From positions 62,001 to 126,000 of the IMG/VR virus record IMGVR_UViG_3300024502_000010: a DNA stretch of 64,000 bases, one strand, 5' to 3'. How positions within the stretch are numbered: the stretch's first letter is position 1; each line of letters begins with the position of its first letter. The notes beneath the pieces were generated by a model that saw only the letters and a list, made by a program, of their open reading frames with translations, was not told the DNA's origin and did not search any database. The position numbers and the translations under genes were made by a program. This document shows positions 62,743-63,624 of the stretch, one piece after another.

Positions 62743-62922
62743 TCATCGTACATCGTATTCATCTTCCTCGTCATAAAATACTTCGTCGTAGTCACTTAAA
62801 AAATTTTTAATTTCTTCATAGACAGGATCTTTAACCTCAGTCTCAGGTTCAATCTCTGCTTTTAAACAATCTACCAGAGACTCAAGGTTTCTGACAATAA
62901 GTTTAAGTTTTTCTCTATCCAT
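62743..62922 (-). CDS. Hypothetical acidic protein (MDREKLKLIVRNLESLVDCLK...)
   Basis: 59-aa ORF by manual translation, directly after the promoter at 62946. Confidence 0.7.
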   Translation of the reverse strand: MDREKLKLIVRNLESLVDCLKAEIEPETEVKDPVYEEIKNFLSDYDEVFYDEEDEYDVR

Positions 62923-62945
62923 TTTTTATAAACCTCGACAAAGGT

Positions 62946-62985
62946 ATTATAGACAAAAAAAGAGGTGGAGTCAAGTCCACCTCTT
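62946..62985 (-). promoter_or_regulatory. Terminator hairpin overlapping a sigma70-like promoter for the thyX-phoH operon
   Basis: AGAGGTGGA/TCCACCTCT stem + T7; TTGACT (62969-62974)-N17-TATAAT (62946-62951). Confidence 0.8.
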
Positions 62986-62988
62986 AAG

Positions 62989-63087
62989 TCATTTTGCTGC
63001 TACCAGAGTAGCAAGAGATGCTTTTTGACGCCTCTCTTCTTTTTGTTTTTGTTCTTTAATGAGTTGAAGAAAGTTTAGTTTTTTCAT
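62989..63087 (-). CDS. 32-aa basic peptide MKKLNFLQLIKEQKQKEERRQKASLATLVAAK
   Basis: ATG overlaps the DUF4278-like stop (TGATG) and the ORF ends at the terminator. Confidence 0.6.
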   Translation of the reverse strand: MKKLNFLQLIKEQKQKEERRQKASLATLVAAK

Positions 63088-63224
63088 CACTTATGCCCCT
63101 CCTTTACAAACTTAACACCACGATAGTTTTCGTTATACTGTTGGGGTTGTTGCATCATTTGCTGTTGATACTCAAGACGCTTTTGCTTGTCGTATTCAAC
63201 ACCGCGATAAACTACTTTTGACAT
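63087..63224 (-). CDS. DUF4278-like peptide (45 aa, two YRGV motifs)
   Basis: MSKVVYRGVEYD...ENYRGVKF; AGGAG RBS; directly downstream of the glutamine-II-like aptamer. Confidence 0.8.
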   Translation of the reverse strand: MSKVVYRGVEYDKQKRLEYQQQMMQQPQQYNENYRGVKFVKEGHK

Positions 63225-63256
63225 TAGGTTTTCTCCTTAGTTTTTAGGTTAAAGAG

Positions 63257-63307
63257 CGTTCCTTCAGTCGGCGTTTCCGTTCGCTATTTGCGAATAGCGA
63301 ATGAACG
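63257..63307 (-). ncRNA. Glutamine-II (Downstream-peptide)-like riboswitch, compact copy
   Basis: CGTTCA-TTCGCTATT(CGCA)AATAGCGAA-CGGAAAC-GCCGAC-TGAAG-GAACG: P1 CGTTC/GAACG, perfect 9-bp P2, CGG/CCG; upstream of DUF4278-like ORF. Confidence 0.8.
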
Positions 63308-63312
63308 AATTG

Positions 63313-63561
63313 CGTTCCGCGTCGGCTTACTTCCGTCCTATTAGGTTTTAGCACTTTACTATGAAATCCTTTCGGAGTTCTAATAACAATCGGTCCTCTA
63401 TCTTTTGAATTACTACATCGTCGTTTTTAACGATGTCCATTAGTTCCATCGCGGTGTCGCAAGAAACTGCAACCTGTTGGATGCTAGATGCTTGTGGCGC
63501 TGAAACGAAGAGGAAAGGAACCCATGCTAAAAGCAAGAGTGCTTTAGTCATAGGATGAACG
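63313..63561 (-). ncRNA. Second, split glutamine-riboswitch-like aptamer whose P2 loop contains ORF 63348-63551
   Basis: 5' half CGTTCA-TCCTAT (63550-63561); 3' half ATAGGA-CGGAAGTAA-GCCGAC-GCG-GAACG (63313-63341). Confidence 0.6.
63348..63551 (-). CDS. 67-aa signal-peptide protein with C-x2-A...E-x-RK...C pattern
   Basis: Hydrophobic N-terminus; same pattern as ORF 17180-17344. Confidence 0.65.
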   Translation of the reverse strand: MTKALLLLAWVPFLFVSAPQASSIQQVAVSCDTAMELMDIVKNDDVVIQKIEDRLLLELRKDFIVKC

Positions 63562-63562
63562 G

Positions 63563-63624
63563 TAGAGGATTATTATACCTCTATTCAACTTATATAGGAA
63601 GTTTTGTGTGTATTTCCTGATACA
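63563..63624 (-). promoter_or_regulatory. Promoter with NtcA-type site
   Basis: TGTA-N8-TACA at 63609-63624; TATAAT 63572-63577 inside a TAGAGG/CCTCTA inverted repeat; weak -35 (TTCCTA). Confidence 0.6.

Follow-up and report, generated by a model that had tools for sequence, protein, structure and literature searches.

In Synechocystis sp. PCC 6803 the 5′ UTR of gifB (IF17) carries a type 1 glutamine riboswitch (glnA RNA, RF01739), which is built on CGUUCA, a P2 hairpin, ACGGAA and then GAAGGAACGC; a pyrimidine tract located directly 3′ of P1 can pair with the ribosome-binding site, which implies a translational ON switch, and the downstream gene encodes a DUF4278 protein (PMC6212724). Two glutamine-class aptamers can also be found in series ahead of one gene (PMC2864571), and 157 doublets and 4 triplets have been counted (PMC9481103). 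In cyanophage S-CREM1 an element of this kind was annotated as glnA by its authors (PMC9964418), and homologous doublets are present in S-PM2 and P-TIM68. Hence, tandem glutamine riboswitches, their link to DUF4278/IF17-like genes and their presence in cyanophages are all published. Here we analyzed a small promoter-to-terminator unit, located between speD and thyX of a T4-like cyanomyovirus, within a 64-kb stretch (64,000 nt, the window) of a 205-kb genome. As in the systems above, a doublet of glutamine-type aptamers precedes a gene for a short IF17-like peptide, but the first aptamer is split by a complete, conserved small gene that occupies its P2 loop. Literature searches for an ORF nested in a riboswitch aptamer found nothing relevant.

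An earlier note, made from the sequence alone, described a compact aptamer lying 5 nt after the 3′ half of a split one, followed by AGGAG and a 45-aa ORF with two YRGV motifs. This observation was confirmed, because every feature was found on the minus strand, at or within 2 nt of the coordinates given there (Table 1). The 5′ half of the split aptamer, however, lies 219 nt upstream of its 3′ half and outside those coordinates, and the note did not take up the most unusual feature, i.e., that the split is caused by a gene nested in P2. The combined pattern (5′ half, 195-225 nt, 3′ half) occurs once in the window and in none of 100 shuffles.

Table 1. Features of the glutamine aptamer doublet and its transcription unit (positions are those of the window)
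Feature	Position	Strand	Description	Supporting observations
Sigma-70-like promoter	63572-63600	-	-35 TTCCTA (63600-63595, weak), 17-nt spacer, -10 TATAAT (63577-63572); the -10 ends 10 nt before CGUUCA	Read from the sequence, below the threshold of the promoter scan; positionally homologous to TTGACT-17-TATAAT in S-PM2; TATAAT in 35 of 44 unique split-aptamer contexts, best -10-like hexamer at a fixed 10-nt distance in 41 of 44
Aptamer 1, 5′ half	63550-63561	-	P1 5′ strand CGUUC, A, P2 5′ strand UCCUAU; the last two bases are the AU of the nested AUG	Invariant in 46 unique contexts; intact in all 36 ORF-A contexts that keep a 3′ half
Predicted local hairpin H0	63521-63554	-	-13.5 kcal/mol; pairs CCUAUG (P2 5′ strand plus start codon) with codons 9-11 of ORF-A, an alternative partner for the P2 5′ strand	In MFE and centroid folds; 97.8% of cells paired in 36 unique sequences, against 28-49% in slid controls, with one compensatory pair
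Nested ORF-A	63348-63551	-	67 aa, in the P2 loop of aptamer 1; signal-peptide-like N-terminus (by eye), then two predicted helices bounded by two Cys	dN/dS 0.26; 250 protein clusters; 264 IMG/VR contigs; weak AF2 model (pLDDT 55)
Aptamer 1, 3′ half	63313-63341	-	P2 3′ strand AUAGGA (63341-63336), junction CGGAAGUAAGCCGAC, then GCGGAACG; P1 3′ strand GAACG (63317-63313)	90.6% identity to the S-PM2 tandem; AUAGGA has 0.000 pairwise difference, against 0.25-0.28 at adjacent neutral-like sites
Inter-aptamer linker	63308-63312	-	CAAUU, 5 nt	3 nt in most relatives
Aptamer 2, compact, glnA-type	63253-63309	-	CGUUCA...GGAACG spans 63307-63257; P1 63307-63303 with 63261-63257; P2 a 9-bp stem, 63301-63293 with 63288-63280, loop CGCA; core ACGGAAACGCCGACUGAAGGAACGC	RF01739 match over 63309-63253, 34.7 bits, E 1e-5, full model 1-53; same hit in the whole-genome search
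Expression platform	63233-63256	-	Anti-SD CUCUUUA (63256-63250) pairs with SD UAAGGAG (63239-63233; AGGAG 63237-63233) across a 10-nt loop	In MFE and centroid folds; base-pair probability 0.92-0.98; stems conserved and loop variable across 84 leader variants; mechanism by analogy with PMC6212724
YRG-repeat micropeptide	63087-63224	-	45 aa, DUF4278-like (IF17-like); YRGV at residues 6-9 and 34-37	PF14105 18.6 bits, E 0.0024; phrog_5049 E 6.6e-9; orthologues
Overlapping ORF	62989-63090	-	32/33 aa, UGAUG stop-start overlap, last gene of the unit	Not conserved in all relatives
Intrinsic terminator	62946-62985	-	Hairpin (62985-62960) plus T-run; a TTGACT-17-TATAAT promoter for the next unit is embedded in it (62974-62946)	

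The interpretation given in the earlier note, i.e., glutamine-II-like aptamers with cooperative or two-input sensing in front of a DUF4278/IF17-like peptide, was only partly supported. In order to assign the class we ran the covariance-model scan that the note had proposed as a check, together with the RF01739 model. RF01704 (glutamine-II, Downstream-peptide) gave no hit at E≤10 in 62900-63600 or at E≤1 in the whole genome, no second hairpin encloses GGAACG, and the start codon of the peptide lies 32 nt downstream of the aptamer. Aptamer 2, in contrast, matched the full RF01739 model, although 0.3 bits below the gathering cut-off of 35 bits, so that a scan of the window at the gathering threshold returned only two tRNAs and the aptamer appeared only with the E-value threshold. 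When the leaders of the same peptide in 20 other loci were scanned, 17 RF01739 hits and no RF01704 hit were obtained, and twelve were at or above the cut-off (35.1-53.7 bits). Aptamer 2 has the P1 CGUUC/GAACG, the unpaired A, an adjacent P2 closed by U-A, the ACGGAA junction and the GGAACG(C) 3′ element, and aptamer 1, whose insert precludes direct scoring, has all of these except that CGCGGAACG replaces the consensus GAAGGAACG. The glnA-type (glutamine-I) class is therefore the best assignment. The label glutamine-II-like is nevertheless understandable, because the first-position aptamers of some relatives do resemble RF01704 below threshold (S-PM2 and P-TIM68, 24.6 and 28.8 bits).

The tandem arrangement is shared with S-PM2, S-CREM1 and P-TIM68, which have two compact aptamers at the same position (90.6%, 86.8% and 74.5% identical to the window, respectively). 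The linker was 3 nt in 119 of 133 unique contexts, so there is no room for a second expression platform, and a single anti-SD/SD platform follows aptamer 2, with base-pair probabilities that reached 0.99. On this basis the cooperative sensing suggested in the note is plausible, whereas two-input sensing has no support, since both aptamers carry the same glutamine-class core. The assignment of the peptide to the margin of DUF4278 was supported. A search against PF14105, also proposed in the note, placed the window peptide below the Pfam gathering cut-off of 25.3 bits; six of 7 orthologues matched, with orthologue scores of 20.3-26.0 bits, and only the P-TIM68 orthologue (26.0 bits) passed. The link between DUF4278 and IF17 is as published (PMC6212724), but these short peptides lack the C-terminal part of IF17 that is needed for GS binding. 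A predicted complex of the peptide with Synechocystis GS gave no evidence either way, and a comparison of the peptide with solved structures returned nothing significant.

We then analyzed whether the split aptamer has been preserved. After in silico removal of the 219-nt insert it folded into P1 plus P2 and scored 40.4 bits (E 5.7e-13) against a profile of 71 unique compact first-position aptamers, whereas none of 1110 shuffled controls exceeded 6.1 bits. Like the 5′ half, the noncoding P2 3′ strand was invariant in 46 unique contexts, while ORF-A 4-fold sites differed by 0.247 per site and the adjacent linker by 0.276, and P2 was exactly 6 bp in 45 of 47 contexts. Of 39 unique contexts chosen only by ORF-A protein similarity, 36 were nested between both halves, and the 3 that lost the 3′ half by deletion also carry a P1 mutation. 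In L154 (L numbers denote individual loci of the comparison) the nested aptamer is the only aptamer next to the anti-SD platform. The support for the long-range P1/P2 is conservation and not covariation, because these pairs never vary within the ORF-A set. Furthermore, nearest-neighbour folding gave the long-range P1/P2 a probability of about 0.02 and favoured the conserved hairpin H0, which ties up the P2 5′ strand, so that the split aptamer may fold rarely. MFE and centroid folding of the whole leader did not recover the aptamer folds, as expected for ligand- and tertiary-stabilised folds, and we do not use this result against them.

A second family of nested genes was also detected. In addition to the contigs with relatives of ORF-A, another 406 IMG/VR contigs encode ORF-B, a 50-aa ORF that was located in P2 of aptamer 2 in all 47 unique contexts examined. 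The word search saw only 0.55-1.75 times the query length, so that longer fusions would have been missed, but no claim here rests on the absence of relatives. ORF-A and ORF-B had no detectable homology (hhalign probability 0.8%) and are treated as unrelated, although both are two-Cys modules of about 45-50 residues with a KND motif. Both are under purifying selection, with a dN/dS of 0.22 for ORF-B, and the aptamer halves around them are frozen. The last six codons of ORF-B overlap the aptamer core, and their third-position diversity was 0-0.06, against 0.3-0.7 just upstream, and L145 shows a compensatory P2 variant, UCCC/GGGA. No function could be proposed for ORF-A from Pfam or PHROGs, which gave no hit, or from the protein atlas, which gave only leads below 0.8.

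The explanation that we favour, with reasonable confidence, is that the doublet controls translation of the micropeptide as a translational ON switch, with a gene tolerated, and possibly co-regulated, inside the first sensor. The analysis itself shows that both aptamers carry the class consensus (with the deviation of aptamer 1 given above), that the sequence directly after aptamer 2 is predicted to pair with the SD, and that the two aptamers, joined by only 3-5 nt, share one platform. Glutamine binding, expression and the switching itself are inferred: by analogy with the gifB riboswitch, glutamine would capture the nucleotides just 3′ of P1, melt the anti-SD:SD hairpin and turn peptide synthesis ON when glutamine is high. 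From folding we infer that, without ligand, the 3′ P1 strand of aptamer 1 pairs with the identical-sequence 5′ P1 strand of aptamer 2, so that both aptamers would have to fold together, which would give a steeper response. In this view aptamer 1 is not degraded but discontinuous, with a P2 loop of 207 nt. The transcript probably starts about 3 nt before P1, so that the roughly 13-nt leader of ORF-A is the 5′ half of the aptamer, although the weak -35 in this window makes read-through from speD possible. Because the comparative data show that selection keeps both the gene and the two aptamer halves intact, we take the split aptamer to be a working sensor that tolerates, and may be coupled to, the gene inside it. 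The target of the peptide, inferred only from family resemblance, would be host GS or another nitrogen-status component.

A more far-reaching possibility, which we consider tentative, is a reciprocal two-gene switch, in which the gene within the aptamer is a designed feature rather than baggage. Closure of the aptamer around the nested ORF would bury its AUG, so that the nested gene is OFF at high glutamine while the downstream peptide is ON, and ribosomes starting or ending on the nested ORF would in turn unfold and reset the sensor. This would be a new riboswitch architecture, with protein-coding sequence and ligand-binding core overlapping. In agreement with it, the AUG lies in the P2 5′ strand in two ORF families without detectable homology, the leader of ORF-A is essentially the 5′ half of the aptamer, ORF-B stops at the UGA inside the core GACUGAAGG, and some ORF-A variants stop at the UAG inside AUAGGA. 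However, the AUG of ORF-A is predicted to be paired in the ligand-free state too, in H0, so the aptamer may add little occlusion, and the shared junction could reflect the insertion or deletion mechanism rather than selection. Many compact aptamers also carry AUG in the P2 loop.

It is somewhat less likely that only aptamer 2 senses glutamine and that aptamer 1 is a relic, inactivated when a small gene landed in its P2 loop, with the 5′ half persisting as the translation start region of ORF-A and the 3′ half as a P1-strand competitor for aptamer 2. The low probability of the long-range pairing and the stability of H0 are consistent with this model, as is the finding that this intergenic spot accepts selfish DNA: a homing-endonuclease-like ORF sits between the aptamers in L017 and its relatives (the 196-aa ORF of L017 had no Pfam hit, but PHROGs gave endonuclease families). 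In addition, ORF-A can persist without the riboswitch (L098, L099, L103). Against it, the noncoding AUAGGA and the whole junction are frozen while neighbouring sites drift, which covers more than the GGAACG strand that a competitor role would need. In L154 and in every ORF-B phage the split aptamer is the only one adjacent to the SD platform, yet the aptamer core and anti-SD stay conserved, even at synonymous sites, and in L023, L050, L054, L062 and L145 both aptamers are split, so that under this model those phages would have no sensor at all.

The reading of the earlier note in its two-input form, glutamine-II aptamers in an asymmetric tandem that integrates two different inputs, is very unlikely. 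Apart from the sub-threshold matches in S-PM2 and P-TIM68, it finds support only in the consistently different 3′ elements of the two positions, CGGAACGG against GACUGAAGGAACGC, and the scans and the shared core described above argue against it. Finally, that the inserts are structured noncoding extensions of P2 with accidental ORFs can be all but dismissed, because, although the 348-nt leader folds better than shuffles (z = -3.05) and the first 45 nt of ORF-A are unusually conserved (93% mean column identity), the dN/dS is 0.22-0.26 with a dS of 0.5-1.0, length variants keep the frame open (ORF-A 66-70 aa; ORF-B 50, 51, 55 or 59 aa), and there are hundreds of protein clusters, plus a signal-peptide-like N-terminus and two invariant Cys.

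The part that was already known, a putative phage-borne glutamine switch on an IF17-like peptide, says that these cyanophages would read the nitrogen status of the host during infection, which is useful but expected. The nested-gene architecture matters because standard annotation cannot see it: loci where every aptamer is split gave no Rfam hit at all (L023, L145 and L154), hence riboswitch censuses under-count and the halves are read as orphan fragments. It is also a natural case of dual coding, in which the last six codons of ORF-B are the aptamer core and start and stop codons sit inside aptamer helices, and this sets up a direct contest between ribosomes and ligand-dependent folding. The architecture is experimentally tractable, since the ORF-B version exists in three cultured freshwater Synechococcus phages (S-SRM01, DSL-LC02 and DSL-LC03), and it would show how tolerant a 50-nt aptamer can be to a 140-220-nt insertion in P2, which is relevant to riboswitch engineering.

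When compared with the gifB riboswitch, which has the same aptamer consensus, the element described here is encoded by a phage, is arranged as a doublet with a 3-5-nt linker, has a product of only 45 aa that lacks the IF7-like C-terminal part of IF17, and carries a gene in P2 of its first aptamer. The tandem glutamine riboswitches were listed among pseudo-cooperative systems with several expression platforms (PMC9481103), whereas here the 3-nt linker leaves room for only one, and folding predicts a P1-strand-swap hairpin between the two aptamers; we found no description of aptamers interrupted by ORFs. The S-CREM1 element is orthologous and has the same peptide family downstream, and such elements lie near thyX/td in S-PM2, P-TIM68 and S-SRM01, and next to speD in S-PM2, but the doublets of S-CREM1, S-PM2 and P-TIM68 are compact, and no isolate in the phage collection searched carries ORF-A. 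The glutamine-II motif shares CGUUCA, a hairpin and the CG(C/G)A...GGAACGG core elements, and is also associated with DUF4278 peptides, but it places GGAACG in the loop of a second hairpin, forming a pseudoknot, with the AUG inside the motif, and that hairpin is absent here. Group I introns with ORFs in peripheral loops and discontinuous hammerhead ribozymes are likewise functional RNA folds whose halves are separated by hundreds of nucleotides, and in the introns a protein gene sits in a loop. Those RNAs are ribozymes, and the ORFs are usually homing endonucleases that promote their own spread, whereas here the host RNA is a small, putatively ligand-binding aptamer, the ORFs encode 50-67-aa proteins without an assigned function, and the start codon, and for ORF-B also the stop codon, lies inside the helices or core of the aptamer itself.

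Between speD and thyX, in a 204,829-base IMG/VR virus record whose closest named relatives in this stretch are the Kyanoviridae cyanomyoviruses S-PM2, S-CREM1, P-TIM68, S-SRM01, DSL-LC02 and DSL-LC03, lies a short unit that runs from a promoter-like site to a terminator hairpin, with its elements in the order listed below. The earlier note had placed a compact aptamer, the 3′ half of a split one, an SD and a peptide gene with two YRGV motifs in this region, and its coordinates and description proved correct.

Features of the speD-thyX interval and other elements of the window
Feature	Position in the window	Strand	Remarks
speD	63956-63630	-	PF02675
-35 of the promoter-like site	63600-63595	-	TTCCTA, weak
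-10 of the promoter-like site	63577-63572	-	TATAAT
Aptamer 1, 5′ half	63561-63550	-	CGUUCA-UCCUAU
Local hairpin (predicted)	63554-63521	-	-13.5 kcal/mol; pairs the P2 5′ strand and the AUG with codons 9-11 of ORF-A
ORF-A	63551-63348	-	67 aa; its AUG overlaps the 5′ half of aptamer 1
Aptamer 1, 3′ half	63341-63313	-	AUAGGA, CGGAAGUAAGCCGAC, then GCGGAACG
Inter-aptamer linker		-	5 nt
Aptamer 2 (compact)	63307-63257	-	
Anti-SD	63256-63250	-	CUCUUUA
SD	63239-63233	-	UAAGGAG
Peptide gene	63224-63087	-	45 aa, YRGV...YRGV
Stop-start overlap	63089-63085	-	UGAUG
Overlapping ORF		-	32/33 aa
Terminator hairpin	62985-62960	-	
Promoter-in-terminator junction	62985-62946	-	TTGACT in the hairpin loop, TATAAT 17 nt further on
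thyX	62795-62043	-	PF02511
tRNA gene	32798-32727	-	71.8 bits
tRNA gene	33195-33112	-	52.4 bits

The overlap between the stop codon of the peptide gene and the start codon of the next ORF suggests translational coupling to the latter, which is not conserved in DSL-LC02. The junction formed by the terminator and the embedded promoter resembles the early-promoter stem-loop cassettes of T4-type phages, and the same hairpin directly follows ORF-A in three deletion variants (loci L098, L099 and L103).

We then analyzed to which class the aptamers belong. At the Rfam gathering threshold the two tRNA genes were the only hits in the window, but at the E-value threshold the compact aptamer matched RF01739 (glnA RNA, glutamine-I) over the full model, with 34.7 bits against a gathering score of 35 and an E-value of 1e-5. 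RF01704 (glutamine-II), the class proposed in the earlier note, did not match in this region or anywhere in the genome. The leaders of the same peptide gene in 20 other viral loci gave 17 RF01739 hits, of which twelve were at or above the cut-off (the best at 53.7 bits), and none of these loci gave an RF01704 hit. In S-PM2 and P-TIM68, however, the first-position aptamer gave RF01704 matches below the cut-off, at 24.6 and 28.8 bits, and its 3′ element reads CGGAACGG rather than GAAGGAACGC. This explains the glutamine-II label, but the RF01704 architecture, which has GGAACG and the AUG in the loop of a second hairpin, is absent. When the peptide was compared with DUF4278, the window peptide matched at 18.6 bits, below the cut-off of 25.3 bits; six of 7 orthologues matched, and that of P-TIM68 passed the cut-off at 26.0 bits.

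The sequence CUCUUUA directly follows the GGAACG of aptamer 2, and it was predicted to pair with UAAGGAG in both the MFE and the centroid structures, with a base-pair probability of 0.92-0.99. Across 84 leader variants the two strands are conserved whereas the loop varies. The linker between the aptamers is 3 nt in 119 of 133 unique contexts, and hence it is inferred that aptamer 1 has no platform of its own. Both P1 helices have the same sequence, and in the ligand-free ensemble the 3′ strand of aptamer 1 is predicted to pair with the 5′ strand of aptamer 2 (probability 0.58-0.86). If this pairing is real, both aptamers must fold together, which would be a simple route to a steep response.

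In order to determine whether the split aptamer is a whole aptamer interrupted by a gene, we searched for the pattern of 5′ half, 195-225 nt, then 3′ half, which occurred once in the window and in none of 100 shuffles. When the insert was cut out in silico, the resulting sequence scored 40.4 bits (E 5.7e-13) against a profile of 71 unique compact first-position aptamers, whereas shuffled controls scored at most 6.1 bits, and the spliced form folded into P1 plus P2. These results indicated that the split aptamer is a whole aptamer with a gene in P2. To see how widespread this arrangement is, 80 loci were retrieved by similarity to the peptide, 80 by similarity to ORF-A and 80 by similarity to a second nested ORF (ORF-B); IMG/VR contains at least 264 contigs with ORF-A relatives and 406 with ORF-B relatives. 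Among the architectures observed, two compact aptamers are the majority. In others, ORF-A (66-70 aa) lies in P2 of aptamer 1, or ORF-B (50-51 aa) lies in P2 of aptamer 2, as is the case in the isolates S-SRM01, DSL-LC02 and DSL-LC03. In addition, both aptamers are split in loci L023, L050, L054, L062 and L145, and in locus L154 one nested aptamer is the only aptamer before the anti-SD platform. The loci whose aptamers are all split (L023, L145 and L154) give no Rfam hit, so that these riboswitches are invisible to routine annotation. Contexts chosen only by protein similarity gave an unbiased count: for ORF-A, 36 of 39 unique contexts are nested between both halves, and for ORF-B all 47 are nested. 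The three ORF-A exceptions have lost everything from the 3′ half to the terminator, and they also carry AGUUCA in place of CGUUCA.

In locus L017 (positions 571-1158; also in L032, L035 and L077) a 196-aa ORF sits between aptamer 1 and aptamer 2; it matches PHROGs annotated as HNH / homing endonuclease (E 4e-9 and 9e-6), although a Pfam search gave no hit. This ORF starts right after aptamer 1 and then reads through the whole compact aptamer 2 to the same UGA in GACUGAAGG that ends ORF-B, so the conserved aptamer DNA seems to be a landing site for mobile genes. In loci L041, L073, L074, L075 and L078, where P2 of the compact aptamer 2 is UCCC-AAUG-GGA, the AUG in the P2 loop is in frame with the YRG peptide, with no stop, in 5 of 6 unique sequences. 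This probably explains the many 62-78-aa gene calls among the database relatives of the peptide, and it may be a real N-terminal extension or chance among close relatives.

Selection acts on both the nested genes and the RNA halves. Median dN/dS was 0.26 for ORF-A (dS 0.51) and 0.22 for ORF-B (dS 1.03). Among 46 unique split-aptamer-1 contexts the mean pairwise difference per site was 0.247 at the 4-fold sites of ORF-A, 0.276 in the linker between the stop codon and AUAGGA, 0.20 in the 20 nt upstream of CGUUCA and 0.108 in the variable middle of the core, but it was 0.000 both in the 5′ half of the aptamer and in the noncoding P2 3′ strand AUAGGA. P2 is exactly 6 bp in 45 of 47 contexts. In ORF-B the last six codons are the P2 3′ strand and core of the aptamer, and the UGA stop lies in GACUGAAGG; the third-position diversity of these codons is 0-0.06, whereas codons -7 to -20 show 0.3-0.7, apart from Trp and one Lys codon. 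P2 of split aptamer 2 keeps 3 invariant pairs and extends to 9-12 pairs in many sequences, and L145 carries a divergent 59-aa ORF with a compensatory P2, UCCC/GGGA. A comparison with hhalign found no homology between ORF-A and ORF-B (probability 0.8%), and yet both start with an AUG in the P2 5′ strand.

By eye, ORF-A looks like a signal peptide followed by two helices bounded by two invariant Cys; its predicted model has a pLDDT of only 55, and the family searches assigned it to no family. ORF-B matched phrog_504, of unknown function. A prediction of the complex of the 45-aa peptide with GS gave no verdict, and its role as a GS inactivator is inferred from family only.

The analysis shows, from sequence, the aptamer halves, their conservation and the purifying selection on the nested genes, whereas glutamine binding, expression of the genes and the operation of the switch are inferred; the evidence for the long-range pairs of the ORF-A aptamer is conservation and not covariation. 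A simple model, in which folding of the aptamer hides the start codon of ORF-A, is weakened by the predicted, conserved local hairpin at the start of ORF-A. This hairpin is paired in 97.8% of cells over 36 unique sequences, against 28-49% in slid controls, with one compensatory pair, and the first 45 nt of ORF-A are far more conserved (93% column identity) than the 4-fold sites of the ORF as a whole. It competes with P2, so that the AUG of ORF-A is predicted to be paired with or without the aptamer fold. The -10 element is conserved: TATAAT is present in 35 of 44 contexts and the best -10-like hexamer lies at a fixed 10-nt distance in 41 of 44. This puts the transcription start about 3 nt before P1, and ORF-A would then have a leader of about 13 nt made of aptamer sequence; the -35 in the window is, however, weak.

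The interpretation given in the earlier note was therefore only partly supported: what it describes is a tandem glnA-type glutamine riboswitch on a DUF4278 micropeptide in a cyanophage, an already known kind of element, to which it gave the wrong subclass label. The split, which the note mentions in passing, is the part that we could not find described in the literature searched: a conserved, widespread arrangement in which small protein genes are nested in the P2 loops of glutamine aptamers, with start codons, and for ORF-B the stop codon, inside aptamer helices or the core. The tandem itself is ancestral and known, and 157 doublets and 4 triplets have been counted (PMC9481103). glnA and Downstream-peptide aptamers precede DUF4278 genes, DUF4278 is part of IF17, and glutamine binding turns IF17 synthesis on, probably by melting a helix between the nucleotides 3′ of P1 and the RBS (PMC6212724). 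Among the cyanophages, the element of S-CREM1 is annotated as a glnA riboswitch, and S-PM2, S-CREM1 and P-TIM68 have two compact aptamers at the homologous place, followed by a peptide starting M-(S/A)-(K/Q)-x-(T/V)-Y-R-G, whereas in the window the first aptamer of the pair carries ORF-A in its P2 loop.
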